Positions 1 to 11,416 of a stretch of 11,416 bases of DNA are shown here, one piece after another (position 1 is the first letter of the stretch; each line of letters begins with the position of its first letter). The DNA is taken from positions 1 to 11,416 of IMG/VR virus record IMGVR_UViG_3300022188_000577. One strand, 5' to 3'. A program made the translations under genes and the position numbers. A model generated the notes under the pieces. That model saw only the letters and a list, made by a program, of their open reading frames with translations, made no database searches and had not been told where the DNA came from.

Positions 1-66
1 AGCTTGAAGGTTTAACCGTTATCTGAATGTATGTAGAATCCACATCCAAATCCGTTAGAATTCCTT
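1..66 (+). repeat. Terminal direct repeat, copy 1 (circular assembly overlap)
   Basis: agcttgaagg...ttagaattcctt is identical to 11351-11416. Confidence 0.98.
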
Positions 67-1132
67 TATACTCTAATTCCGAACCATACCAAACCTCAAT
101 TACAAATGGATTAAAGTATTCCCAATCGTCTTCATAGAACTTATGCCATGTCCCATCATCATACGGATTTGTGAGCTTTGCGTATAATATCTCGACTTCT
201 TCTGTTAGTCCGTTTTCATCCGTTTGGGCTTCTGCTATTAAGTTGTTGTTTCTATCATATACTTTAACAACTCTGCCATATAATGGATTACCGTTTATAT
301 CTGTAACCTTGAATACTACTGTATAAACTCTTTGGATTTCTCCGCTTATATCTCCTTCAGCCAAATACCACCCGATTTTCCAGTTATGCGGTTTACAGTT
401 TACATATTTAGCCACATTCGGAGAGCGCAACCTGTAAACATTCGCTAACCTATCTTTTGACGAACCTCTTAAATTTCTAAAAACTTGCCCAGCAGAGTTT
501 ACGACCCATGTCATTTGCGCAACAGTCGTCTTAATGTAAACATCCTGAACGTCGCAATTAACCACGTCTTCCATATAACCCCATTTGCCCGTTATTATGT
601 TCTTGTGAAACTCAGTATATCTTAAGTCTCTCACTACATTGTGGAATAAACAACCTTTAACTTCCTTTGCATATCCTCTAAAGTCAAATCTATGTGAATC
701 ATCTCTTAGTATAAAGCTACACGCATAAAACTTAACATCGCTATCTTTCTCAACATTGAAGTATGCGATATATGAGCTTTGATATAGCACAAATGTACAT
801 CCTTTTTGATAATTTTCTTCTCCATCTGTAATTACTTTCTCACCAAAAGTAGCGTTACAGTTTGCTTTAAAGTTTATAATGCGTTCACCATTATAGCTTG
901 CTTGAGTTTCAACTACTAAAACCGTTCCCTTCTCTTCGAATAGCGTTTCAGTGCTACCATCGCCGAATTGAAGCTTAGCAGTAGTTTTGTAAACACATTC
1001 GCTAAGTTTCGTGAATTTTCCCCATCCATTATTTACGTCGGCTTGATAAATATCCTCAAAAGTGTAAGGGCTTCCGTTTTTTGACCCTACTACTGTAATT
1101 GTATTGGTTGTAGAATCGTAAGTTATCGGCAT
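1..1132 (-). CDS. 400-aa putative adhesin/terminal fibre protein, N-terminal 377 codons; continues across the junction at 11350->11280
   Basis: Hand translation: ATG at 1132 (2 nt after the upstream stop), no stop down to base 1. Begins MPITYDSTTNTITVVGSKNGSPYTFEDIYQADVNNGWG. Beta-rich middle, then a prealbumin/carboxypeptidase-regulatory-like motif VFKVTDINGNPLYGRVVKVYDRNNNLIAEAQTDENG. Function is inferred. Confidence 0.88.
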   Translation of the reverse strand, partial: MPITYDSTTNTITVVGSKNGSPYTFEDIYQADVNNGWGKFTKLSECVYKTTAKLQFGDGSTETLFEEKGTVLVVETQASYNGERIINFKANCNATFGEKVITDGEENYQKGCTFVLYQSSYIAYFNVEKDSDVKFYACSFILRDDSHRFDFRGYAKEVKGCLFHNVVRDLRYTEFHKNIITGKWGYMEDVVNCDVQDVYIKTTVAQMTWVVNSAGQVFRNLRGSSKDRLANVYRLRSPNVAKYVNCKPHNWKIGWYLAEGDISGEIQRVYTVVFKVTDINGNPLYGRVVKVYDRNNNLIAEAQTDENGLTEEVEILYAKLTNPYDDGTWHKFYEDDWEYFNPFVIEVWYGSELEYKGILTDLDVDSTYIQITVKPSS

Positions 1133-1134
1133 AT

Positions 1135-1410
1135 TTACAATGGATATTCTTCTGGAATTTCTTCACATTGGCTTAGGTCTATCTCTACGTTAATGTCTGA
1201 AACGTCAATCGTATCTTTCTCGTATTCTTTTAGACGTTCAGGAATTTCTAATCCTTGTAGCTTTAACGTTGCTACGTATAGTATCTTAAACTTTTCTGGA
1301 ACTTTGTCCCAATCCATCCTATACCACTTGTCATTGCAAGGAAACACTATCTCTAAGTTTTCTCCGCTTTGGTTCACGTTTATCAAATTGAATGGTATTT
1401 TTACTATCAT
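1135..1410 (-). CDS. Hypothetical protein, 91 aa (fibre operon)
   Basis: ATG start, 1-2 nt gaps to both neighbours, typical composition. Confidence 0.8.
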   Translation of the reverse strand: MIVKIPFNLINVNQSGENLEIVFPCNDKWYRMDWDKVPEKFKILYVATLKLQGLEIPERLKEYEKDTIDVSDINVEIDLSQCEEIPEEYPL

Positions 1411-1411
1411 A

Positions 1412-1762
1412 TTACTTATAAAACTCTGATATCTTAATTAAATTGCCGTTTTCATCATATATCAAATCTCTCTTTAATTGAATAGTTTGATTAGCTTCTT
1501 CATCAAATACATAAAAAACGATTTGCTTTAAAGTAGAATCTTCATAAATAAACTCTACGTCTAATATTTTCACTATAACTTCTTTATATTCGTTTGTAGA
1601 AGTATCTTTATAATATATTACATTTCTATTCTTATATAATGTAAATATTGGGTCTCTTAATATCACTTCATGCTTGTCTACGTAAGCTACTAACTTATTC
1701 CAATCCTTCGCATATAATACCTCTCCCTCTCTTTTTCTTAACTCGTTGTATACCTCTCCCAT
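1412..1762 (-). CDS. Putative virion fibre/adaptor protein, 116 aa
   Basis: N-terminal GEVLYAKDWNKLV resembles the G-x-x-(I/L)-x-A-x-x-WN motif of viral fibre N-termini; C-terminal LIYDENGNL beta-hairpin. Function is inferred. Confidence 0.7.
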   Translation of the reverse strand: MGEVYNELRKREGEVLYAKDWNKLVAYVDKHEVILRDPIFTLYKNRNVIYYKDTSTNEYKEVIVKILDVEFIYEDSTLKQIVFYVFDEEANQTIQLKRDLIYDENGNLIKISEFYK

Positions 1763-1771
1763 TGTTATATA

Positions 1772-2425
1772 TTATATTATTATGATATAGTTATTATCTC
1801 CATACCAATCTATGATTACTTTTTTCGTCATTACGTAACTATTATAGGGTTTTTCAGAATATACGTCAACGATTACGTTTAATATTCTACATAATTCATC
1901 GTAAAACGTATTTTTTGTTATGTTATTATGTATTTCAATACATAAATTTGGCTTGTCTCTCTTTAAAACTTCGTATGCACCTAATAAAACGTTATACTCG
2001 TGTCCTTCCGTATCTATTTTAATAAAATCTACTTTTATGTTATTGAATAAGTTATCAATCGTTTCAGTCTCTACGTCGTAAGTATCTTTTGTTTTAACTT
2101 CTTTATGCTTGTCATCAACTATTGAAGAATGAACTAACGTCTCTTTATCGTAAAACCTCGTTTTTCCTTTTATACTTGATAAAGCTATGTTATAACAAAA
2201 GACTTTCTTATTTAACAATCCCAATTCTTCCATATTTTTAATTAAAATGTTGTATAACTTTTTGTTAGGTTCAAATGCATAAACTTTTTCTGAAATTTGT
2301 GATAAAAAATAAGACCATTGCCCATCTGATGCTCCAATGTCTATTGCCACATTATACTTCTTATCCTTGAAATATTCCTTTATTTTCTTTTCGTGGACAT
2401 TCCATTTAAGTATCTCAATCACCAT
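1772..2425 (-). CDS. FkbM-family SAM-dependent methyltransferase
   Basis: Motifs IDIGASDG, VYAFEPN, NIALS, TIDNL, FIKIDTEGHEYNVLLGA, IEIH. Confidence 0.93.
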   Translation of the reverse strand: MVIEILKWNVHEKKIKEYFKDKKYNVAIDIGASDGQWSYFLSQISEKVYAFEPNKKLYNILIKNMEELGLLNKKVFCYNIALSSIKGKTRFYDKETLVHSSIVDDKHKEVKTKDTYDVETETIDNLFNNIKVDFIKIDTEGHEYNVLLGAYEVLKRDKPNLCIEIHNNITKNTFYDELCRILNVIVDVYSEKPYNSYVMTKKVIIDWYGDNNYIIII

Positions 2426-3123
2426 TTTACCTTATCTAATATATCCTTTTCCGATAACTTTCCTTTAAACTCTATTAGTATAAAGTTATCATACTGTAAA
2501 CAATTATCAATTACTTCAATATATTCCGCATATACTTTTTTTAACATGTCTTTAAATGTTTCCTTTGTTAATTCATTATATGGAAAGTAATCAAATATCT
2601 TTCTAAAAAATACTGAAATCATAAAGGCATTAGTTATCTGCTTCCCCATTGCATACTTGTCAGTTTTATCCCACCAACCCATGTAAGAATTATATACTTC
2701 TTCAACAGGTCTTTTCAACGCTATAACTTTACAATGCTTAAATCTTTCACATATTTCCTTTAAATGTATCCATATGTAAACATCTTTTATTAACCAATTT
2801 CCATCCAATCTATCTATTTCTCTTAATATTCTTAGATAACTCCCTCCTACTTCAATATCTGGATACAAGTTCCAAACCCATTCGTGCATCCATGTTTTTG
2901 CATTTTCATAAATTCGTTCAAGTAATTCTTTTGGTAGCTTATAATAATCGTGGTTAATTTCACCTATTACGTCGTGAGTTAAGCAATTTCCTCTTAACGC
3001 AAACTCTGGATAATCTTTATTGAAAGGTTCATACAATCCATATAAGTTATAATGTTCTTTTAATACTTTATATGTGAATGCTGTTCCCGTTCTCGGAAAA
3101 GAAATTATCATGAACTTAATCAT
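2419..3123 (-). CDS. PAPS-dependent sulfotransferase
   Basis: N-terminal 5'-PSB loop ISFPRTGTAF, then YEPF, and 3'-PB-like motif VIALKRPVEEVYNSY. Overlaps the methyltransferase start by 7 nt. Confidence 0.85.
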   Translation of the reverse strand: MIKFMIISFPRTGTAFTYKVLKEHYNLYGLYEPFNKDYPEFALRGNCLTHDVIGEINHDYYKLPKELLERIYENAKTWMHEWVWNLYPDIEVGGSYLRILREIDRLDGNWLIKDVYIWIHLKEICERFKHCKVIALKRPVEEVYNSYMGWWDKTDKYAMGKQITNAFMISVFFRKIFDYFPYNELTKETFKDMLKKVYAEYIEVIDNCLQYDNFILIEFKGKLSEKDILDKVKW

Positions 3124-3144
3124 GTTAAAAAAATAATTACACTA

Positions 3145-3152
3145 TTTTTAAA
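3145..3152 (-). promoter_or_regulatory. Candidate archaeal TATA box for the sulfotransferase operon
   Basis: TTTAAAAA on the minus strand, 22-29 nt upstream of the ATG at 3123, preceded by purine-rich GGAGAA. Confidence 0.45.
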
Positions 3153-3238
3153 TTCTCCGTCTTTTTAATAATCTTCTTAATAAACTTTTCTTTTCATACA
3201 ATTTCATTATCACATATATTATAAAAAATAATATTAGG

Positions 3239-3532
3239 TTAGCAAGCAAATCTACTACGTTCATTTCTTTGTTCTTCTTCAACTTTTTCTATAAAACTCT
3301 TCACGACGTTCTGGTAAGTATCGAGTATCACTGTAATCGTGTTCAAAGTTGCAAACGCCGATGCATACAGTAATGTTATAGCGTCCATTTCTTGCCCTTT
3401 TTCCTTTAGCTTTTCATTATAAGCTTCTGCTATTTCTTCAAGTAAGCTTACATACTCATCTACTATCTTTTTTAATCTCTTTTTTGATATCTCCTCTGCT
3501 TCTTTGAACCTTCTGTACACTATCATCCTCAT
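3239..3532 (-). CDS. Hypothetical helical/coiled-coil protein, 97 aa
   Basis: ATGA overlap with the upstream gene; charged helical composition. Confidence 0.8.
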   Translation of the reverse strand: MRMIVYRRFKEAEEISKKRLKKIVDEYVSLLEEIAEAYNEKLKEKGQEMDAITLLYASAFATLNTITVILDTYQNVVKSFIEKVEEEQRNERSRFAC

Positions 3533-3801
3533 TTCAATATGAATTCAATTTCTATTCCATCCTTGAACTTAACCCAGATTGTATCGTTCTTTCTTACTTC
3601 ATATGATATACCATCATCCTTTGATTTTGCGTATAATTTGTTATTATGAACGAATAAATCATCTAATTCATCAAGGTTATACTGATCGTCTATCAAAGTT
3701 ATCGATTCTATGTCTTCTTTATTTTTCTTTATATACTCTATAAATTTCCTTATCTTTTCAACTTTTTTTCTATTGAAAAAGTTTGTTATCACGTTTCCCA
3801 T
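3529..3801 (-). CDS. Hypothetical protein, 90 aa
   Basis: ATG preceded by an SD-like GTGA; overlaps both neighbours. Confidence 0.8.
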   Translation of the reverse strand: MGNVITNFFNRKKVEKIRKFIEYIKKNKEDIESITLIDDQYNLDELDDLFVHNNKLYAKSKDDGISYEVRKNDTIWVKFKDGIEIEFILK

Positions 3802-4004
3802 ATTATCACTACAGTTCTATTTCCTTTTTTCTTCGTTTTTATTTCTTCTTTTATTTCTAATTCTTTTACTGCTGAATATACAGCTCCTATCGTTGAATTC
3901 GCTTCTTTCACTATTTCCTTTACCAACTCTGATAATTCTATTTCCTTTATTCCTTTTGCTTTTAACTCATTTATTTTTTTCAAGATGTGTTCTTTCAATG
4001 TCAC
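3789..4004 (-). CDS. Winged helix-turn-helix DNA-binding protein 1 (71 aa from a GTG start)
   Basis: Aligns without gaps to 8883..9089 if it starts at GTG 4004. A TATA/BRE sits 27-34 nt upstream of that GTG, so the track start at 4052 is probably too long. Confidence 0.72.
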   Translation of the reverse strand: MTLKEHILKKINELKAKGIKEIELSELVKEIVKEANSTIGAVYSAVKELEIKEEIKTKKKGNRTVVIIWET

Positions 4005-4030
4005 GTTAATGTTATTTATTATCATCATCA

Positions 4031-4044
4031 TATTTAAATTTTTC
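4031..4044 (-). promoter_or_regulatory. BRE + TATA box for the wHTH1 operon
   Basis: Minus strand reads GAAAAA-TTTAAATA. Confidence 0.6.
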
Positions 4045-4066
4045 TTCATCAACTCGAAAATTAAAC

Positions 4067-4114
4067 AAATTGTTAAACGAATTTTTTGATAAATTGTTTG
4101 ATAAATTATTGAAT
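4067..4114. repeat. Four imperfect tandem 12-bp repeats
   Basis: aaattgttaaac / gaattttttgat / aaattgtttgat / aaattattgaat. Confidence 0.6.
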
Positions 4115-4175
4115 AAATGGTCCATTAGAGTATTTACTTTACAAAAATACTATATTTTATTTAACGACAATTACT

Positions 4176-4183
4176 TTTAATAA
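4176..4183 (+). promoter_or_regulatory. Candidate TATA box for 4209..4421
   Basis: TTTAATAA 26-33 nt upstream of the ATG. Confidence 0.45.
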
Positions 4184-4208
4184 GTTACTTGATACGTTAC
4201 TTATTAAA

Positions 4209-4421
4209 ATGTCTTACAACAAAGTTTCAAAGCTTTTTAAAAGCGTTTCGTGTTTGTTTAAACTGATTGAACTTTTTGAGAGAATTGATAATTTCCAAAA
4301 GGATCTAATTATTATAAAAGAGAGGATTAAATACATTAACGACGAAGTTACAGAAATTAAAAAAGACGTTAAAGAGTTAAGAAAGTTTATTTTCGAAATC
4401 TTAATTAAAAACAAGAAGTAA
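4209..4421 (+). CDS. Small coiled-coil protein, 70 aa
   Basis: Heptad pattern RIDNFQKDLIIIKERIKYINDEVTEIKKDVKELRKFI; upstream TATA box. Confidence 0.7.
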   Translation: MSYNKVSKLFKSVSCLFKLIELFERIDNFQKDLIIIKERIKYINDEVTEIKKDVKELRKFIFEILIKNKK

Positions 4422-4425
4422 TCCA

Positions 4426-4593
4426 TTATTTTATTATCTTAACGATTCTTTCAAACGTTGGTTTGTTCTTTAACATTACTCTAAAGACTTTATTACAATA
4501 AGGACATCTTTTCGTCCAATTGTATTTGTTATTCGATTTTGGTTGATATTTCATTGTTTTATTACAATGTGGGCATTGAACTATTAATATCAT
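4426..4593 (-). CDS. C4 zinc-ribbon protein, 55 aa (absent from the ORF track)
   Basis: Hand translation MILIVQCPHCNKTMKYQPKSNNKYNWTKRCPYCNKVFRVMLKNKPTFERIVKIIK*, with two CPxC motifs. Starts 9 nt after the upstream stop. Confidence 0.85.
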   Translation of the reverse strand: MILIVQCPHCNKTMKYQPKSNNKYNWTKRCPYCNKVFRVMLKNKPTFERIVKIIK

Positions 4594-4602
4594 ATTAACG
4601 AT

Positions 4603-5043
4603 TTATAATAAATAATATTTATTAAGTTGCGACGTTCCTAAGACGAAAGCTTTCTTAAATTCATAAGGTCTTTCATACCTATTGTATATTATTATCTTAT
4701 CTATTTCGTTTAAAATATCAGGGTTTAAGTTATACTTTGAAAACTCTTGCTTGATAATTGATACGTATCTTTCCCTATCAACTTTCCATTTATACTTTAA
4801 TTGCGTTTTGAATAGTTTTTGAGCGTATAACAAGTAAGTTTGTAATTCTATTGGTGTTAAGTTATACTTTTGTAAAACTCTTTTAACAGTTTGTAATATC
4901 CTTTGTTCAAACAAAAAATTAACTGTCCAGTTGTTTTTATATTTCTCAAAGTCTATTTTATCAATCGTGTAATTGTTAACGTAATTGTTAGTTCCTTCAA
5001 TGTCCCAGTTGCACTTTACTTTATAAAATTGCATTTTACTCAT
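4603..5043 (-). CDS. SIRV2-type capsid-fold paralog (putative minor structural protein), 146 aa
   Basis: VKRVLQKYNLTPIELQTYLLYAQKL...FSKYNLNPDILNEI matches the MCP C-terminal bundle (VGAILDSHGVPPNQRPFYINVAREV...WISRGLDPAIIDEI) and is clearly paralogous to 10878..11273. Confidence 0.78.
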   Translation of the reverse strand: MSKMQFYKVKCNWDIEGTNNYVNNYTIDKIDFEKYKNNWTVNFLFEQRILQTVKRVLQKYNLTPIELQTYLLYAQKLFKTQLKYKWKVDRERYVSIIKQEFSKYNLNPDILNEIDKIIIYNRYERPYEFKKAFVLGTSQLNKYYLL

Positions 5044-5057
5044 TGTTTAATTATGTT

Positions 5058-5146
5058 ACCCTTGATTTATAAACATTGAACCCTATGTGACCACTTGCCC
5101 TGTAATCCGACATGACCCTTGACTTAAATACTTTGAACCCTGCGTG
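5058..5146. repeat. Two 32-bp direct repeats, 57-bp period (5058-5089 and 5115-5146)
   Basis: acccttgatttataaacattgaaccctatgtg vs acccttgacttaaatactttgaaccctgcgtg, 26/32 identical. Confidence 0.85.
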
Positions 5147-5534
5147 TTACACTTACTTTATTCATAATCATTATTATCTTTAACTTCTTCGCCATCTCGA
5201 ATAGGTCTTTATACTTATTGACGTCTATATCGTGTTTTTTAATGAAATCAAGTATGTTTTGATAAATTAACTCAAAAGTTTTGTTTGTAAACTTTCTATG
5301 CTTGTAAACTATTTTTTTACAAAACGAAAACGTTAGCATTGCGTCCCACGACGTCCATTCACACCTTTCTATCTTTCTATTTGCATAATCTATAAAGTGT
5401 TTTTCAACTTCTAACTGATAAGCTAATTCATAATATACTTTATCATATGTTAACTCCTTTACTTTTGAAAATATGAGTTCCTGTTGTTGCTTGTTAAACT
5501 TGTTATAAGCTCTTTTTAAAGAATATTTAAGCAT
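5124..5534 (-). CDS. Divergent capsid-fold paralog, 136 aa (possibly 160 aa via a +1 shift, ending at 5051)
   Basis: TAATG coupling to the upstream gene. FSFCKKIVYKHRKFTNKTF...IKKHDID resembles MCP INVAREVYRLSRKFAGQTL...ISRGLD. Confidence 0.65.
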   Translation of the reverse strand: MLKYSLKRAYNKFNKQQQELIFSKVKELTYDKVYYELAYQLEVEKHFIDYANRKIERCEWTSWDAMLTFSFCKKIVYKHRKFTNKTFELIYQNILDFIKKHDIDVNKYKDLFEMAKKLKIIMIMNKVSVTRRVQSI

Positions 5535-6415
5535 TAAAAACCTCTACTTTGTCTATATTCTCTTAATACATCAAATTGAGTCGAATATGTAACTATTACA
5601 TGTTTTGCTATATCCTTATACCTTCTAACAAAATAATCTAATATCCTAAACAATTTCATTTTAACCCTATTTAAATAGTATCTTTTTCTTTCGTTTATTC
5701 TTTGCATTTTTCTTGTTAAATACTTTCTCATCCAATCTTCATAATTATCAACATACCTTTTTCTATACTCCAAGTATCTAACTTTATATCTCAATTTATA
5801 ATATGCTCTGTATACTTTGTTTTCCTTTGCTTTGTTAACTAAATCATTTAATGTGCTTATCAACTCAGAAGCTTTTGTTTTGTCATGTTCTTTATTAATT
5901 AATTTTTCATAATATTCAAGAGTATCCTCATATGCGTCTATTATTTTTAAATGTATATCATATGTTTTGTGTTGTTTTAACATATTCTTAAACGACTCAA
6001 CATCGTTTTTATAGTCATTTATTATCGATTCAATTTCGTTTAAAACCTCTTTTGCTTTATCATAATTTTTTGATTTAATTAAGTTTTTAACAAGCTCAAA
6101 CTTATTTCTTATTAAGTAATTTCTATCTCTTAATCTTCTTTCAACTGAATCAAGATCAACACCTCTTGCTTTTTGATACATATGTATGTAGAAAGGTAAA
6201 TTATCTATACAAAACCATACAGCCATTACAATTATTGAAATTAGTGCTGGGTTTATATCTATTCTATTTTCATCAATTATATATTGAAAATCTTTGTATC
6301 TTGATTTTAATCTGCTTAAAATTTCGTCATATTTTCTTATTATCTTATATCTTATTGAATCATATTTTCCTAAATAATACATTAATCTCTGTTCTGCTTC
6401 TTTTCCGGATATCAT
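5534..6415 (-). CDS. Basic alpha-helical protein, 293 aa, probably structural or DNA-binding
   Basis: Long ORF directly downstream of the MCP; rich in K/R/Y; helical. N-terminus (RLMYYLGKYD) weakly recalls the MCP N-terminal arm. Confidence 0.75.
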   Translation of the reverse strand: MISGKEAEQRLMYYLGKYDSIRYKIIRKYDEILSRLKSRYKDFQYIIDENRIDINPALISIIVMAVWFCIDNLPFYIHMYQKARGVDLDSVERRLRDRNYLIRNKFELVKNLIKSKNYDKAKEVLNEIESIINDYKNDVESFKNMLKQHKTYDIHLKIIDAYEDTLEYYEKLINKEHDKTKASELISTLNDLVNKAKENKVYRAYYKLRYKVRYLEYRKRYVDNYEDWMRKYLTRKMQRINERKRYYLNRVKMKLFRILDYFVRRYKDIAKHVIVTYSTQFDVLREYRQSRGF

Positions 6416-6421
6416 TATAAT

Positions 6422-6431
6422 AAAAAATAAA
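6422..6431 (-). terminator. Candidate archaeal oligo(T) terminator after the MCP gene
   Basis: TTTATTTTTT 15 nt after the stop; the same motif follows 8883..9089. Confidence 0.4.
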
Positions 6432-6446
6432 GTTAGTTAGATGCTA

Positions 6447-6809
6447 TTAATAGACGCAAGTTATTCCAAATAACGCCAAAATCTCGTCAATTATGGCTGG
6501 GTCTAAACCTCTTGAAATCCACTTGCTTCTTACTATGCAAGCCTCGTTAGTTAACGTTTGCCCTGCAAATTTCCTTGATAACCTGTAAACTTCTCTTGCA
6601 ACATTGATATAGAAAGGTCTTTGGTTTGGAGGAACTCCGTGCGAGTCTAAAATAGCACCTACTTGAGTTTCTATTGTTGCTAAGTTGCTAAATTGTGTAT
6701 CAACTTGCTCTACCATTATATCCTTTAACGCTGTAAATCTACTTTGAATTACTGTTGGGTCGACTTTTGCTTCATACTTTTTCTTCCTATATACGTCAGA
6801 CCTTACCAT
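6447..6809 (-). CDS. Major capsid protein, SIRV2/AFV1-type (Adnaviria helical MCP), 120 aa
   Basis: Basic N-terminal arm RSDVYRKKKYEAKVDPTV, then V-x-A-I-L-x-x-x-G-V...R-x-x-Y and a terminal GLDPAIIDEI. As I recall it, this parallels the rudivirus coat pattern (RYAKWQAKF...NPTV...VSAVLTQYGI...NRAIY...NPQVLDAV). Has its own strong TATA box and a downstream T-tract. Confidence 0.85.
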   Translation of the reverse strand: MVRSDVYRKKKYEAKVDPTVIQSRFTALKDIMVEQVDTQFSNLATIETQVGAILDSHGVPPNQRPFYINVAREVYRLSRKFAGQTLTNEACIVRSKWISRGLDPAIIDEILALFGITCVY

Positions 6810-6835
6810 CTCAATATATAATGTATTTTTACTAC

Positions 6836-6850
6836 TATATAAAGTTTATC
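6836..6850 (-). promoter_or_regulatory. BRE + TATA box of the MCP promoter
   Basis: Minus strand GATAAAC-TTTATATA; TATA is 27-34 nt upstream of ATG 6809. Confidence 0.7.
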
Positions 6851-6890
6851 TTGTTGTTTCACTTTTGAGTTATCAAGAACCCATTGTGTT

Positions 6891-6903
6891 CAAAATTTAT
6901 AAA
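6891..6903 (+). promoter_or_regulatory. BRE + TATA box of the divergent zinc-finger operon
   Basis: CAAAA-TTTATAAA; TATA is 23-30 nt upstream of ATG 6926. Confidence 0.65.
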
Positions 6904-6925
6904 TGAAAGGTCATGTTGGTATATT

Positions 6926-7084
6926 ATGTCAAAGGTAACCTTGTGTCCCAGATGTAATAATAATATGAAGAGTATTTATATTAAGAGAGGAGGAAAGTAC
7001 GTTATCATAGGAAAAATTTGTTTAAATTGCAAGTTATACTTCTTTTATGATATTGATACCAAAGGAAAACGTGATAAGACTTGA
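6926..7084 (+). CDS. C4 zinc-ribbon protein, 52 aa
   Basis: MSKVTLCPRC...ICLNC. ATG 6926 fits the TATA spacing; the track start at 6884 lies upstream of the promoter. Confidence 0.78.
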   Translation: MSKVTLCPRCNNNMKSIYIKRGGKYVIIGKICLNCKLYFFYDIDTKGKRDKT

Positions 7085-7412
7085 GGAAAACAAGTGTATT
7101 AGAAAGTTAGAGGACTTGTTAGACGCTGAAATAAAGACTTTAGAAAAGTTCATTAACAAAGCTTCTGAAGTTAAAAGAAGATTGTATAAGTTAGATTTAG
7201 ACGAAGACGTTAAAAAAAATGTGTTATCTGCTTACGATGAGATAGTAAGTAAGTATGTTTACGAGAATGTAATTAAAAACATCGTTTATTACACTTTATT
7301 AATATGTTACGCCAAAGTTCTAAAAGAAAAACGAAAGTTATTTTGTTATGAGGATTCAAAAGGTGCAATATACGTTCATTACCTCCCTCACATAAAAGAG
7401 TTGCAAAAATAA
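7047..7412 (+). CDS. Hypothetical helical protein, 121 aa
   Basis: ATG start, overlaps the zinc-finger gene, typical composition. Confidence 0.78.
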   Translation: MILIPKENVIRLEENKCIRKLEDLLDAEIKTLEKFINKASEVKRRLYKLDLDEDVKKNVLSAYDEIVSKYVYENVIKNIVYYTLLICYAKVLKEKRKLFCYEDSKGAIYVHYLPHIKELQK

Positions 7413-7435
7413 ACTATTCCTATCATTGTTAAGAT

Positions 7436-8596
7436 TTAAGTAGATAAATGTAACAAGAATTTTGGATAATTGTTTTCCGCGAGAAACTTATCGTAATACT
7501 TTTTAGTTGCTTTTCTCTTTTTTTCTGTTAAATCTTGATTCTTATAAGCTTTTAACATAGTTTTTGCTAATTCAGAAGCTTCGTATTCGTAGTATTCGCA
7601 CATAAATCCATGTTCGTTTGGTTTTTGTATTATCGATTCATAATCAAAGAAATACGCAACGTCTTCTCTTATTAACTCTTTAAACAATTGATGTTTAACG
7701 CATATTACACAGTTATTAAAATATAAAGATTCTGCAATTGGCATGCAAAAACCTTCTGACTTTGAAGAAACAACATAAACTTTACTTACATTGTATAAAC
7801 TCAATATTTCCTTATAGGATAAGCTTCCTCCTAAATCAAGTTGTATTATCCTTTTCTTTTCTATTAACTTTTTTATGAATTTGTGTTGCTTTAAGTTGTA
7901 ATCTGTTATTAAAACGTGCACGGTATCTTCTATCTTGTTTTTTAAACAATGTTTATAAAACATAGTTAAAGCTTTTACGTATTTATCCCATCCTTTTCTT
8001 GTATTTTTGTTTGCATTTGTCATATAAACGAACTTATCAGTTAAATCAACGTTATAGTTTTCTTTAAAGAATTCATACGCCCAATCTTTTAGTTTTTTGG
8101 CATCATTTATATAACTTTTTGGTATGGAGTGATAAATTACGTCTGTTATTTTTACGTCGTGTTTTCTTATTATGTTGTAAGTGTAATAAGAATTTGCTAT
8201 TATTTTAGCATACTTTGAAATATTTTGTAGATTTAACTTCAAAAGTAAGTTTTTGTATAAAGTGTCTCCTTCGACTGTGTAATATATGATATTTCTTTTT
8301 TTAGTTGACATTGAAATAACGTGAGTTAAGTTCGAAACGTAAAAAGAACCAAGAGGAACTATGAATATTCTTTTATCAAATAGTTGCATCTTTCTTATAA
8401 AGTTAGAAGATAAAGAATTTTCAAATATGTCAATGTATGCGTGAATTTGATTTTGTTTTAATATCTCAGAAATCGTTTCTGCTACGTTTTTAAAAGATAT
8501 AGCGTCTACGTAAAAAATAGCAACCGTTGACGATTTCAAATCGTCCAAATAATCTGATATCGATTGTGAAAGAGTGGTGTCGTCTCGCCACTTCAT
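7436..8596 (-). CDS. GT-B fold glycosyltransferase, family GT4
   Basis: IANSYYT, VIYHSI, RKGWD and the signature VVSSKSEGFCMPIAES (E-x7-E). GT4 enzymes are common in rudiviruses and lipothrixviruses. Confidence 0.92.
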   Translation of the reverse strand: MKWRDDTTLSQSISDYLDDLKSSTVAIFYVDAISFKNVAETISEILKQNQIHAYIDIFENSLSSNFIRKMQLFDKRIFIVPLGSFYVSNLTHVISMSTKKRNIIYYTVEGDTLYKNLLLKLNLQNISKYAKIIANSYYTYNIIRKHDVKITDVIYHSIPKSYINDAKKLKDWAYEFFKENYNVDLTDKFVYMTNANKNTRKGWDKYVKALTMFYKHCLKNKIEDTVHVLITDYNLKQHKFIKKLIEKKRIIQLDLGGSLSYKEILSLYNVSKVYVVSSKSEGFCMPIAESLYFNNCVICVKHQLFKELIREDVAYFFDYESIIQKPNEHGFMCEYYEYEASELAKTMLKAYKNQDLTEKKRKATKKYYDKFLAENNYPKFLLHLST

Positions 8597-8604
8597 TTTT
8601 CATC

Positions 8605-8640
8605 AAACTTTTAAAAAAATTATCGAACAAATTTTTCAAT
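8605..8640. repeat. Three imperfect tandem 12-bp repeats resembling 4067-4114
   Basis: aaacttttaaaa / aaattatcgaac / aaatttttcaat. Confidence 0.45.
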
Positions 8641-8657
8641 CTTTTTTAATCATCTAA

Positions 8658-8806
8658 CAGTTGTGATTTTATTATTAGTTTTATTATACAATACTTCAGG
8701 ATATATATTAGCAAAAAATCAATAGTATTGTATTATAGTAGTAATAATTAATTAAAGTAATTATCAAATAGTTAATTAATTAAATTAAAAAATAAAATCA
8801 CTACTG
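8658..8806. repeat. Nested inverted repeats in the longest intergenic region (candidate origin)
   Basis: Outer pair 8658-8673/8791-8806 (15/16). Inner pairs 8682-8695/8724-8737 (13/14) and 8745-8755/8772-8782 (11/11). Confidence 0.75.
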
Positions 8807-8843
8807 AGTTAAAAAAAATCTGTCGATTTTCGGATAACACACC

Positions 8844-8858
8844 GCAAAGGTTTAATAT
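8844..8858 (+). promoter_or_regulatory. BRE + TATA box for the wHTH2 operon
   Basis: GCAAAGG-TTTAATAT; TATA is 25-32 nt upstream of ATG 8883. Confidence 0.7.
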
Positions 8859-8882
8859 GCTAAAGCTAATAATAAAATAACC

Positions 8883-9089
8883 ATGAACGTGAAGCAACTT
8901 GTATTACTACTGCTACAAGATTATAAGGACATGGGGGTTACCAAAATAGAGGAAAGGGTATTGGTAGAGGAAGTTATAAAGAGAACAGGATGTCACAGGC
9001 AGACTGTGTATAACGTAATACATTGGTTAAAAGTTAGAGGTGTAATAAGGGTTGAAGGCTCGGGTAGGAACAAGTTTATCTTACTTTAA
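8883..9089 (+). CDS. Winged helix-turn-helix DNA-binding protein 2, 68 aa
   Basis: LVEEVIKRTGCHRQTVYNVIHWLKVRGVIRVEG is a typical HTH recognition helix followed by L-x-x-x-G-x-I and a wing. Confidence 0.85.
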   Translation: MNVKQLVLLLLQDYKDMGVTKIEERVLVEEVIKRTGCHRQTVYNVIHWLKVRGVIRVEGSGRNKFILL

Positions 9090-9100
9090 TTTATTTTTTT
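9090..9100 (+). terminator. Candidate oligo(T) terminator after wHTH2
   Basis: TTTATTTTTTT immediately after the stop. Confidence 0.35.
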
Positions 9101-9110
9101 AAAATCGTAT

Positions 9111-9863
9111 ATGAAGTATCGTTATAGGGATATAACATATAGACTTAAAAGGTACAAACTGTACTGGAAACAAAGACTTTATTATATTTTAGTTGATTTG
9201 ATAAAAGAACGCGCGTCTGAAAGGTTATTAGATGAATTAACTAAGCAAATGTTTTTTGAGTGGATTGTTATTCCTAAACTAAAATCTTTAGGATTTACAG
9301 ACGAAGAGTTAAGGAGAATGTTTCCTTCATATCTCGGATATGCAAAGAAGTTGTGGAACAAAAAATACAAGTATGTTTTTTCTTCTTTAGACGTTGAACA
9401 CGATAACGTTTATTACGAAATGATTCAAAGAGGATTCGATAAAGAAAAGAGTAAAACAGCGTTAAATATTGGTAGAAAACATCCTGTCGTTGCAAAAGCT
9501 TATATTAAAGTTTCGTCAACTCCTTTAATTTATCCACCCCTTCTAAAAGCACTTCCCGTTTCTACTAAATTTAGTTACGAAATAGTTCCACCAATATTAG
9601 TATCAAAAGAGTTAAAAACTAAATTTAGTTACAAATTAACTCCACCTTTAACTGTTGAAAAAGAAATTAACGTATCTTTTAATTACTCTCTAGTCCCACC
9701 TTTGGAAGTTGAAAAAGAAATTAACGTGTCTTTTAACTATTCGCTTGTTCCACCAATCAAAATATCGAAAGAAGTTAACGTATCTTTTAATTACGAACTA
9801 GTTCCACCCTTAAAAGTTATAAAAGAAATTGAAATTATATTTAACTATGAAATTACAAGCTAA
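9111..9863 (+). CDS. Capsid-fold N-terminal domain fused to six 18-aa repeats (putative terminal/fibre anchor), 250 aa
   Basis: VIPKLKSLGF...PSYLGYAKKLWNKKYKY...MIQRGFD matches the paralog pattern; C-terminal repeats of the type VPPLEVEKEINVSFNYSL. Confidence 0.78.
   Translation: MKYRYRDITYRLKRYKLYWKQRLYYILVDLIKERASERLLDELTKQMFFEWIVIPKLKSLGFTDEELRRMFPSYLGYAKKLWNKKYKYVFSSLDVEHDNVYYEMIQRGFDKEKSKTALNIGRKHPVVAKAYIKVSSTPLIYPPLLKALPVSTKFSYEIVPPILVSKELKTKFSYKLTPPLTVEKEINVSFNYSLVPPLEVEKEINVSFNYSLVPPIKISKEVNVSFNYELVPPLKVIKEIEIIFNYEITS
9531..9854 (+). repeat. Six tandem 54-bp coding repeats
   Basis: YPPLLKALPVSTKFSYEI / VPPILVSKELKTKFSYKL / TPPLTVEKEINVSFNYSL / VPPLEVEKEINVSFNYSL / VPPIKISKEVNVSFNYEL / VPPLKVIKEIEIIFNYEI. 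Confidence 0.95.
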
Positions 9864-10866
9864 GGTAATACTGAAAATAATAAAAAAAGACGGTAGGGAA
9901 GTAGTTATCGAAAAAGAGTGCAATAGTTTTCACGAAAACTTTTTCAGAATGTTAAAGTCTGTGTATACGAATGACTTAGTTATAACGAATAGGGATGGTT
10001 CAACAACAACTTTAAATCACTTCGAAAAAGTAAGCATTATAAACACAGACGGAACGAAATACACGAAATGGAGGATTGCAATAGGACAAGGAATTTCAGA
10101 TAACGATTTAACGACAATTATCGACGAAAAAGACGCTACAGTTGAATTAGACGAAGCTAACAGAGTTGCAACTGATTACGCAAAGTTTGGTCCTTACTCA
10201 GAATCAAAAACGATTGACGCCGTAGCACTTTATGTAAAAACTAACTTTAGTTCTGGTGCGGGAAAGTTTGCTTGGTCTTTTAACGCACCTTTGCTTTTGG
10301 AAAATGTCGGGACAACGACGATAGAGGCTGGAGACGTTTTAGTAGTTGGAATACAAACTAAGTTAGTCGCAGGGACAAACGTAACGATTCACGATTCTTT
10401 TGTCTATGTTTCTTTATCGTTTTTAGCGTATTACATGATTGAATACGAATATTCACCTGTGGGCGATGACCAACTTCAAATAGCTTCAAAATATAAAGAT
10501 TTAGCTTTGAGTGGTAACGCAGACTACTGGGCTTATTACGATAGTTATTACGACGAAAAACTCGATTTCTTGAATCATTCAGCAGAAATGAAAATTTATC
10601 ATTCTGATGGGACTTCTGTAACTGAATCTGCAACTGCAACGATTGATTTAACTAATAGAAAAGTTATAATCTACGCTTCTCACTTTTATTCAGAATCAAA
10701 GACAGTGACGAAAGTAGAACTTTACATTCGTTTAAAAGGATGGTATTATAGCGATGGATGGGTGCAAGGCGCGTTGTATCACAAACTTTTAACTGCAGAT
10801 AACTTGAACGTAACAGTGGACGTTAACTACACGTTTAAACCAAAGTTTGAAATATCTATACCTTAA
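9847..10866 (+). CDS. Beta-rich putative virion terminal-structure protein with an internal duplication, 339 aa
   Basis: Likely start is ATG 9847. Two related halves, each containing NR...YA...YSESKT(I/V)..V.LY. IAIGQG recalls tail-fibre/baseplate N-terminal domains. Confidence 0.75.
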   Translation: MKLQAKVILKIIKKDGREVVIEKECNSFHENFFRMLKSVYTNDLVITNRDGSTTTLNHFEKVSIINTDGTKYTKWRIAIGQGISDNDLTTIIDEKDATVELDEANRVATDYAKFGPYSESKTIDAVALYVKTNFSSGAGKFAWSFNAPLLLENVGTTTIEAGDVLVVGIQTKLVAGTNVTIHDSFVYVSLSFLAYYMIEYEYSPVGDDQLQIASKYKDLALSGNADYWAYYDSYYDEKLDFLNHSAEMKIYHSDGTSVTESATATIDLTNRKVIIYASHFYSESKTVTKVELYIRLKGWYYSDGWVQGALYHKLLTADNLNVTVDVNYTFKPKFEISIP

Positions 10867-10877
10867 CGAAAATATTT

Positions 10878-11273
10878 ATGACGTGTAAACATTGGAACTT
10901 TCAAGGATACTTTAAGTATAAGCAAAGTTGGACTGACGAAAGGTTAAAAGAGAAAATTGAACCAATTGTAGATAGAATTATAAATAAGTGGAAATCTTGG
11001 CAAATAAGGTTGGACTTTTGCTTAAACAACGTTAAAAGAGTTTTAGATAGATTTGACATAACATCCGTTCAAAGAAAATATTATTTACTTTATGCTATTT
11101 TATTATGGTCTGTAATGTTTTTGTATGAATGGTTGGTCGATAGGAAAAGAGAACATTCTATTTTGAGATATAAGTTCGAAAGTTACGGCTTAGATCCGAA
11201 CATTCTAAACGAAATAGATAGAGTTGTTATATGGAACAAAGTTATTCAGCCTGTTAACAGGTTTTGGGAATAA
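10878..11273 (+). CDS. SIRV2-type capsid-fold paralog (putative minor structural protein), 131 aa
   Basis: VKRVLDRFDITSVQRKYYLLYA...KFESYGLDPNILNEID matches both the MCP and 4603..5043. Confidence 0.8.
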   Translation: MTCKHWNFQGYFKYKQSWTDERLKEKIEPIVDRIINKWKSWQIRLDFCLNNVKRVLDRFDITSVQRKYYLLYAILLWSVMFLYEWLVDRKREHSILRYKFESYGLDPNILNEIDRVVIWNKVIQPVNRFWE

Positions 11274-11279
11274 TTATCC

Positions 11280-11350
11280 TTATATAAACTTAAATGCCGT
11301 CATCTTTGCGTCGTGTTTCTTAATCTCGTTGTATATATCGCTTAAAGTAA
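11280..11350 (-). CDS. C-terminal end of the 400-aa junction-spanning protein
   Basis: In frame with 1..1132: ...VKPSS|FTLSDIYNEIKKHDAKMTAFKFI*. TAA at 11280-11282 is 6 nt from the convergent stop at 11273. Confidence 0.85.
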
Positions 11351-11416
11351 AGCTTGAAGGTTTAACCGTTATCTGAATGTATGTAGAATCCACATCCAAA
11401 TCCGTTAGAATTCCTT
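11351..11416 (+). repeat. Terminal direct repeat, copy 2 (circular assembly overlap)
   Basis: Identical to 1-66. Confidence 0.98.

Follow-up and report, generated by a model that had tools for sequence, protein, structure and literature searches.

An 11.35-kb circular-mapping genome with SIRV2-fold capsid genes from hydrothermal vent metagenomes

The realm Adnaviria was defined, and named in its founding paper, by genomes of double-stranded DNA (dsDNA) that is linear and in the A-form. The sequence described here raises the question of whether the hallmark capsid protein of that realm can also belong to a genome that maps as a circle and, if so, what kind of element carries it. We refer to the whole stretch of DNA that was analysed as the window: 11,416 nt with 29.6% GC, corresponding to IMG/VR record IMGVR_UViG_3300022188_000577 and to JGI contig Ga0190313_1001739. 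Its source, metagenome 3300022188, is a high-temperature marine sample from which a Njordarchaeales bin has been reported. A preliminary description, made from the sequence before any database search, had proposed a minimal, circularly assembling virus with a capsid protein like that of SIRV2. We consider it likely that the window is a complete viral genome, that of an archaeal virus not yet cultivated and found in metagenomes of deep-sea hydrothermal vents, and it is one member of a wider, undescribed set of at least five circular-mapping genomes of 5.1-11.4 kb with the same capsid gene set.

A genome that maps as a circle

Positions 1-66 of the window are identical to positions 11351-11416, as the preliminary description had noted. 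The two termini have no longer direct repeat that is exact, and chance cannot account for an exact match of 66 nt within 11 kb. Removing one copy leaves a unit of 11,350 bp (unique unit 1-11350). The left copy (1..66, no strand assigned) marks the assembler's cut point in a cyclic map, not a biological end, and the right copy (11351..11416, likewise unstranded) is its exact repeat. The intact 400-codon open reading frame (ORF) that had been reported to span the join does so: on the minus strand, it runs from an ATG at 1132 through 1 and 11350 to a stop at 11283, with its first 377 codons in 1..1132 and its C-terminal end and stop in 11283..11416, a piece that the database gene call presents as a 44-aa fragment. 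The window contains no inverted terminal repeat (ITR), the longest inverted pair being 37 nt at 70%, and no tRNA, and domain searches found no integrase domain among its ORFs.

From public collections, we gathered every contig that encodes an identical MCP1 (the 120-aa major capsid protein described below) or one of two proteins near the junction, the 131-aa protein on one side of it and the 91-aa protein on the other; contigs from a metagenome scan were added, and all were aligned to the window. L019 (ENA ERZ27248110, assembled with MEGAHIT, 2,144 nt) is colinear with window 10098-11416 and then with 1-890, i.e. across the join. L025 (Ga0190314_1000610, 11,830 nt, from another sample) descends the window from 3903 to 1 and continues from 11416 to 3424, which is one full turn plus 480 nt, with a breakpoint that differs from the window's. 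The same junction is thus present in three independent assemblies, made from different samples with different assemblers. The 9.7-kb contig L026 (the same contig as L013) is a diverged relative from the same sample, with an MCP1 that is 74% identical to that of the window. Its homologue of the junction ORF is 440 aa long, has 54% identity over 392 residues and lies intact in mid-contig; its nucleotide similarity to the window continues straight over the window's join.

We also considered whether L025 might stem from a linear genome with an imperfect direct repeat at its termini, of which the extra 480 nt would be one copy. That is unlikely: all differences between the two copies fall in their central part (3497-3785), where there are 66 substitutions and no indels and the periodicity is largely that of third codon positions; on either side (3424-3496 and 3786-3903) the copies are identical, and another contig, L004, crosses the region. 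The redundancy is the signature of two co-occurring strains bubbling in a cyclic assembly graph. These strains are otherwise 99.8% identical, and the patch at 3497-3785 (66 substitutions) is accompanied by a second strain-variable patch at ~7798-7913 (20 substitutions). Several contigs end at 7798 and near 3903-3982 because such strain-variable patches lie there; other contigs cross both places, and we therefore rejected the shared ends as physical ends of the genome. A more distant strain, L021, is 92.5% identical to the window over 33-3764.

Might the apparent circle nevertheless be a false join through a repeat, made from a real genome that is larger, linear and bounded by ITRs? The unusual length of the 66-nt overlap and the strain mixtures in the samples speak for such an artefact, but they are set against the agreement of three independent assemblies on the junction and the ORF, with its conserved homologue, that spans it. 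All partial contigs of the window virus that we recovered align over essentially their whole length, none with extra sequence or foreign flanks, and four relatives give the same circular result, one of them four times. We give this alternative almost no weight. More broadly, since the junction recurs in independent assemblies and there are no foreign flanks and no ITR, tRNA or integrase, an assembly artefact, a fragment of a larger genome or an integrated element is very unlikely. The earlier proposal of a circular, concatemeric or circularly permuted genome is supported by the reproduced junction, the homologue intact in mid-contig and the absence of ITRs, and no contig extends past the circle into other sequence.

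Small genomes with the same capsid genes all map as circles wherever the surrounding DNA was recovered. L027 (Ga0190363_1002880; unit 9,514 bp, 30.8% GC, MCP1 73% identical to that of the window) has an exact 127-nt overlap and a 370-aa ORF that crosses its join, over which L026 is colinear. L028 (Ga0207433_10019047; unit 9,198 bp, 49.9% GC, MCP1 50% identical) also has an exact 127-nt overlap, with an ORF across the join. For L029 (Ga0272448_1010739; ~8.9 kb, 49.5% GC, MCP1 47% identical) the wrap is imperfect: the sequence that opens the contig recurs close to its end with 99.4% identity and an indel variant. L032 (Ga0180300_10007205, 1-5187; unit 5,098 bp, 44.8% GC, MCP1 41% identical) has an exact 89-nt overlap, and its genome was found again in L046, L047 and L048 (JGI 3300028891, ENA ERZ27227314 and ENA ERZ650341, respectively), with overlaps of 144, 141 and 77 nt and units of 5,098, 5,062 and 5,098 bp, so that four assemblies show four different breakpoints. 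The genome of L032 would be the smallest with a SIRV2-type capsid fold. Of the "minimal" genome first suggested for the window, the small lineage stands but the minimal member does not, since a 5.1-kb relative exists.

In a tree of MCP1 sequences, the window groups with L026 and L027, and L028 with L029, in two well-supported small-genome clades. A single clade uniting the small circular-mapping genomes is not supported by this tree of a 120-aa protein. Related MCP1 genes are also found on larger contigs of 20-33 kb (L002, L023 and L024) and on rudivirus-like fragments with Hjc or giant ORFs (L035-L038).

Capsid-fold genes

MCP1 (120 aa; 6447..6809, minus strand) is a SIRV2-fold major capsid protein according to Pfam, tblastn, AlphaFold2 and Foldseek, which bears out the suggestion originally made for this ORF. 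It passes the curated cutoffs of two Pfam families, PF12193 Sulf_coat_C (29.2 bits, cutoff 25.2) and PF25647 SFV1_VP4 (28.5 bits, cutoff 27), and tblastn matches it to the capsid proteins of Sulfolobus filamentous virus 1 and the Beppu filamentous viruses at ~30-32% identity over 86-89% of MCP1. From 69 homologues, AlphaFold2 predicts five helices with a mean predicted local distance difference test (pLDDT) score of 96. This model superposes on the SIRV2 capsid protein, its first match in a Foldseek search of the PDB (3j9x; E 1.2e-4, template modelling (TM) scores 0.70/0.66). Further PDB matches are SSRV1 (6wq0, TM 0.65), the C-terminal domain of the SIRV-YNP coat protein (root-mean-square deviation 1.0 Å over 69 residues) and both capsid proteins of AFV1, ORF140 and ORF132; the best match among BFVD predicted structures is the capsid protein of SBFV2. 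The protein is 100% conserved on 12 contigs, and its gene is preceded by a TTTATATA box at -34. The window virus therefore has the alpha-helical SIRV2-fold major capsid protein that characterises the realm Adnaviria.

A profile of MCP1 matched 988 protein clusters (50% identity) at E <= 0.001, and 316 at E <= 1e-10, among 1.84 billion representatives, and this capsid family is therefore widespread in metagenomes. Many of the matching proteins have a length of 200-490 aa and carry the capsid domain N-terminally (a few C-terminally), from which it follows that fusions of the capsid fold to other domains are common in metagenomes.

MCP1 is not alone: there are four capsid-fold genes in the window, the others being MCP2, MCP3 and the gene for a 250-aa minor structural protein. 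MCP2 (131 aa; 10878..11273, plus strand) was assigned as a capsid-fold paralogue from profile matches and from the genes that lie beside MCP1 in relatives, being 58-59% identical to those directly downstream of MCP1 in L026 and L027. In hhalign, the MCP1 and MCP2 families match with a probability of 91.8% and E 7e-7, and MCP2 matches the MCP1 profile with E 6e-9; the two proteins have a common C-terminal motif, G-L-D-P-x-I-hydrophobic-D/N-E-I. Among the genomes compared, MCP2 was found only in small ones. The third paralogue, MCP3 (146 aa; 4603..5043, minus strand, with a TATA-like box at -30), is 35% identical to MCP2 (blastp E 1e-20) and was assigned from profile scores: weak matches to the Pfam coat families PF12193 (E 0.003) and PF21660 (E 0.02), and E 2.8e-9 against the 69-sequence MCP1 profile.

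The 250-aa protein (9111..9863, plus strand) combines an N-terminal capsid-like domain of ~105 aa, which matches the MCP profile in both hhalign (95.6%, E 1e-8) and hmmsearch (E 7e-6), with C-terminal 18-aa tandem repeats encoded at 9641-9830 (TRF period 54 nt, 3.5 copies, 18-aa unit). It has homologues in L026, L027, L028 and L029; in the first two of these, the repeat occurs in a larger number of copies, which have also diverged further. Capsid-like minor structural proteins have been reported for rudiviruses, ahmunviruses and chiyouviruses, and the 250-aa protein resembles them.

The arrangement of these genes suggests how the capsid is built. MCP1 and MCP2 genes adjoin in relatives, and tandem pairs occur in L032, with its two SIRV2-type capsid genes, and in L045; because of this, the capsomer would most likely be a heterodimer of MCP1 and MCP2, as in lipothrixviruses and tristromaviruses. 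What had been called a "SIRV2-like" capsid holds for the fold but is corrected for the capsomer, which is probably a two-protein heterodimer, nearer to the lipothrixvirus type than to the SIRV2 homodimer. L045 (Logan SRR26080960) is a 1.4-kb contig with two adjoining 119-aa genes at 530-1261, from a lineage ~47% identical to the window in MCP1. L032 also encodes a 324-aa protein in which a capsid-like N-terminus is fused to a concanavalin-A-like lectin domain.

Comparison with known archaeal viruses

[quoted passage not shown] The lower bound of ~16 kb previously quoted for cultured members is corrected accordingly to 17.6 kb. The window, with 11,350 bp, and its relatives, with 5.1-9.5 kb, fall below this range, and rather than a linear genome with ITRs the window shows no ITR and a cyclic map in three assemblies (a map known from assemblies). 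Metagenomic additions to the realm (Ahmunviridae, Chiyouviridae, Baiyanvirus and other Asgard-associated rods, Demeterviridae, Gaiaviridae and Samediviridae) have been presented as linear or incomplete, and in the searchable literature we came across none whose genome is said to be circular. Nor did our searches of that literature, which does not extend to subscription journals so that a prior description is possible, find any circular Adnaviria.

The nearest classified viruses, and the closest by capsid sequence, are the alphalipothrixviruses (Sulfolobus filamentous virus 1 and Sulfolobales Beppu filamentous viruses 1 and 2; Lipothrixviridae). Like the window, they have two capsid paralogues and glycosyltransferases, but their genomes are linear, 37-38 kb long and end in terminal inverted repeats, in contrast to the 11.35-kb circular map and four capsid-fold genes found here. 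In capsids of the Lipothrixviridae and Tristromaviridae type, two paralogous capsid proteins form a heterodimer; the window has at least two paralogues, adjoining in relatives, that may do likewise. Beyond the capsid, tblastn with MCP2 and the 250-, 345- and 400-aa proteins found nothing at E <= 1 among the phage and archaeal virus records of GenBank, to which the window has no nucleotide match either. Rudiviruses such as SIRV2 and SSRV1 have the same capsid fold (TM 0.70 for 3j9x and 0.65 for 6wq0) and, also like the window, a methyltransferase, a glycosyltransferase and a capsid-like minor structural protein. They differ in that their capsid is homodimeric and their genome linear, 24-35 kb long, bounded by inverted repeats and hairpins, and equipped with genes for a Holliday-junction resolvase and a terminal-fibre protein of very large size. 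In the window, neither Hjc nor any other nuclease domain was found, ORFs do not exceed 400 aa, inverted repeats of this kind are absent, and there are several capsid paralogues instead.

In habitat and size, the nearest group is "Samediviridae", a candidate family of filamentous viruses of Thermococcales from hydrothermal vents (preprint PMC12934983). Vent habitat, data sources, SIRV2-fold MCP-1 and MCP-2, a genome small for Adnaviria and glycosyltransferase modules are common to both. The Samediviridae genomes, however, are 12.3-22.2 kb with 34-54.5% GC, the complete ones linear with ITRs, and encode a core of PCNA, an MCM-like protein, an AEP primase, an SSB and an AAA+ ATPase with a winged helix-turn-helix domain (PMC12934983). 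None of these core domains is found in the window, which lacks any Walker A motif and, at 29.6% GC and 11.35 kb, lies outside the described ranges.

Circular genomes in helical particles do occur elsewhere among archaeal viruses, and three families bear on the question of packaging. Aeropyrum pernix bacilliform virus 1 (APBV1; Clavaviridae) has a 5.3-kb circular dsDNA genome in a rigid helical rod and no recognisable replication genes, and in the Aeropyrum coil-shaped virus (Spiraviridae) the two halves of a circular single-stranded DNA intertwine as a helical nucleoprotein. For Portogloboviridae, a circular genome is described that forms a nucleoprotein wound into a coil inside a shell. APBV1 offers a functional analogy only, in that a circle can pack in a rod: its capsid fold is unrelated to that of the window, and no clavavirus chain is among the Foldseek PDB matches of MCP1. 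Spiraviridae and Portogloboviridae likewise place a circular genome in a helical nucleoprotein but use other capsid proteins, with no detected relation to the window in sequence or fold.

Beyond the capsid protein, the glycosyltransferase and the methyltransferase, the window has no gene in common with classified viruses. In its capsid it behaves like a member of Adnaviria, but it lies outside both the realm's genome definition and every described family.

Other genes and proposed biology

The remaining genes fill a compact genome (coding density 89%) in which minus-strand genes run leftward from 6809 and from 8596 and others run rightward from 8883, the two directions converging at 11273/11283. 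Two large proteins are acidic and beta-rich; searches of the PDB and of GenBank virus records detected no relatives of either. The 400-aa junction protein, conserved in L026, has a weak Ig-like or carboxypeptidase-regulatory-like segment at residues 271-310 and is probably a terminal or host-recognition structural protein. The 345-aa protein (9829..10866, plus strand), conserved in L026 and L027, is a probable structural protein as well; its AlphaFold model, made from three sequences, was poor (pLDDT 51) and was not used for fold searches. Its ORF begins with a TTG at 9829 (the JGI gene call starts at ~9847), so that it and the last part of the 250-aa ORF overlap in different frames at 9829-9863. 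Other lineages have a single protein that joins a capsid-like domain to a beta-rich one.

Three genes encode likely modification enzymes. A group 1 glycosyltransferase (7436..8596, minus strand; PF00534, 54 bits; phrog_2170) contains the strain-variable patch at ~7798-7913, which coincides with four contig ends. A FkbM-family S-adenosylmethionine-dependent methyltransferase (1772..2425, minus strand; PF05050, 84.7 bits; phrog_8156, E 1e-30) is 43% identical to its L027 homologue. A sulfotransferase-like protein (2419..3123, minus strand) matches PF13469 with E 4.5e-5 and PF17784 with 22.7 bits against a cutoff of 22.8, and has an N-terminal P-R-T-G-T loop resembling the loop that binds 3'-phosphoadenosine 5'-phosphosulfate. 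Among the relatives examined, only the window virus has this gene, for which one distant homologue was found among 5.8 billion proteins; it is unusual for an archaeal virus, whereas glycosyltransferases and methyltransferases are common in Adnaviria. In L027, positions 2601-3569 encode a nucleotidyltransferase fused to a cupin or mannose-6-phosphate-isomerase-like domain, which, with the glycosyltransferase and methyltransferase beside it, is a small sugar-activation module. L026 has, at 2348-2686 in an insertion absent from L027, a gene for a Csx3-family protein (PF09620). Csx3 is a type of ring nuclease that degrades the cyclic oligoadenylate signals of type III CRISPR systems, and this may be a counter-defence gene.

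Several small proteins may act on DNA. A basic 87-aa protein (3789..4052, minus strand; pI 9.5) looks winged-helix-like from a weak match to PF21128 MCM4_WHD (E 0.006) and is a candidate DNA-binding regulator; a 68-aa winged helix-turn-helix protein (8883..9089, plus strand) has weak TrmB and HTH matches, with homologues upstream of MCP1 in L026 and L027; and a 55-aa zinc-ribbon protein (4426..4593, minus strand) has two CxxC pairs. No function was recognised for two small acidic ORFs (91 aa at 1135-1410 and 116 aa at 1412-1762, minus strand), for two basic ORFs directly downstream of MCP1 (136 aa at 5124-5534 and 293 aa at 5534-6415, minus strand), the longer of which has a coiled-coil with one hydrophobic segment, or for a 121-aa ORF (7047..7412, plus strand). 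Two further small ORFs, of 97 and 90 aa, lie at 3239..3801 (minus strand), where 3497-3785 is strain-variable. Four operon-leading genes, MCP1 and MCP3 among them, have a TATA-like box at -26 to -34, in agreement with archaeal transcription, although such motifs are frequent in sequence of 30% GC. There are two non-coding regions of interest: an AT-rich stretch at 4053..4213 (GC ~22%) with 12-nt tandem repeats at 4061-4118, a candidate for a replication origin or a regulatory region, and an AT-rich divergent intergenic region at 8597..8882 with several imperfect inverted repeats, which may be a promoter region and an alternative candidate for the origin. No Rfam family was found in the window.

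How, then, is this genome copied? Searches with Pfam, PHROGs, NCBIfam, PDB sequences and motif scans found no replication, recombination or integration domain in the window, L027, L028 or L032, and no window ORF has a Walker A motif or an H-x-H tripeptide. This raises the prospect that the window is not an autonomous virus at all, but a plasmid-like or satellite element that carries capsid genes and needs a helper virus or its host for replication and perhaps for egress. Such an element would account for the absence of any recognisable replication, integration or egress gene from the window and its small relatives and for very small genomes (down to 5.1 kb), and a related virus type with larger genomes occurs in the same kind of samples. 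It accounts less well for a genome of which about a third is structural, with four capsid-fold genes plus conserved beta-rich proteins, and for the conservation of these structural genes at the protein level among strains and relatives. Moreover, no plasmid record matches the window, and other small archaeal viruses, such as the 5.3-kb APBV1, also do without recognisable replication genes. We think a satellite or plasmid distinctly improbable.

Our searches for a host, with an MCP1 alignment and with the methyltransferase over 185,579 species genomes, found nothing. The sulfotransferase-like protein has no close cellular homologue, and the window contains no tRNA or integrase that could serve as a clue. 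Its GC content of 29.6% hints at a low-GC vent archaeon.

The explanation that we favour is that of a virus. In it, a heterodimer of MCP1 and MCP2 would wrap dsDNA into a helical nucleoprotein filament, with MCP3 and the 250-aa minor protein as accessory structural parts and the beta-rich 400-aa and 345-aa proteins as candidates for the particle ends or host recognition. By reasonable extrapolation from ICTV figures, 11.35 kb would make a particle ~260-300 nm long. The glycosyltransferase, the FkbM methyltransferase and the sulfotransferase-like enzyme probably modify virion proteins or glycans, and transcription from the TATA-type promoters of archaea is probably controlled by the winged-helix and zinc-ribbon proteins. 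Inside the cell at least, the genome would exist as a covalently closed circle or as such circles joined into head-to-tail concatemers. The host replisome would copy it, starting in one of the two AT-rich intergenic regions with repeats (4053-4213 or 8597-8882), where the winged-helix proteins are candidate recruiters. Copying by the host machinery is the simplest reading because no replication domain or Walker A motif was found, and a circle or concatemer replicated in this way is proposed because the map is cyclic and there are no ITRs, no replication protein and no integrase. Taken as a whole (a complete genome, a virion that is a SIRV2-fold filament, an intracellular circle or concatemer, and copying by the host), we judge this explanation probable.

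Several points weigh against it. A closed circle, head-to-tail concatemers and a permuted linear genome with terminal redundancy all yield one and the same cyclic map when assembled from short reads, and 66 nt is not a standard assembler k-mer length. The fold of MCP2 and MCP3 was assigned from sequence profiles only. The backbone of the MCP1 tree does not resolve, and the small-genome clades share a polytomy with clades of larger contigs. The packaged form and the autonomy of the virus are proposed from sequence. Finally, all SIRV2-fold capsids that have been studied structurally wrap linear DNA (ICTV profile).

This last point, together with the blindness of short-read assemblies to the difference and the presence of intracellular forms in metagenomic DNA, is what lends substance to a packaged genome that is linear. 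The cyclic map would then come from replication intermediates or from terminal redundancy (concatemers cut to about unit length, or permuted ends). Yet the hairpin or protein-capped ITRs of known Adnaviria, which give no head-to-tail junctions, have no counterpart in the window; breakpoints vary between assemblies, and once strain bubbles are accounted for no contig end acts as a fixed terminus. In addition, the length of a helical rod follows that of its DNA, so that permutation of the headful type would have no obvious mechanism. We regard linear packaging as unlikely, and equally so the virion that it would entail, an ordinary, short Adnaviria-type rod with linear A-form DNA.

Within our preferred explanation of a virus with an intracellular circle or concatemer, a stronger version would have the circle itself enter the particle. 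We advance only tentatively, as a serious possibility that falls short of our expectation, that these genomes represent a clade of family rank or higher that packages covalently closed circular dsDNA of 5-11 kb with an Adnaviria capsid protein. If this were true, the virion would have an architecture unseen in solved members, for example two antiparallel arms co-wound with U-turns at both ends, and MCP3 and the capsid-like minor protein might be specialised for the return strand or the turns. The linear genome with ITRs would then be a derived or non-universal trait of the realm, and small circles could be near the ancestral state.

Reproducible 5-11 kb circular-mapping genomes with the hallmark capsid gene would widen the definition of Adnaviria, and the minimum genome size of the realm would fall to half or a quarter. 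They would also raise a question of structure: how can DNA without ends be accommodated by a dimer whose task is to clamp a single duplex into a one-start solenoid? The genomes are small enough to be synthesised and reconstituted with two to four proteins, which would make the assembly of A-form filaments testable in vitro. Public metagenomes from vents and hot springs hold a layer of very small archaeal viruses without recognisable replication genes, to which the virus described here would belong.

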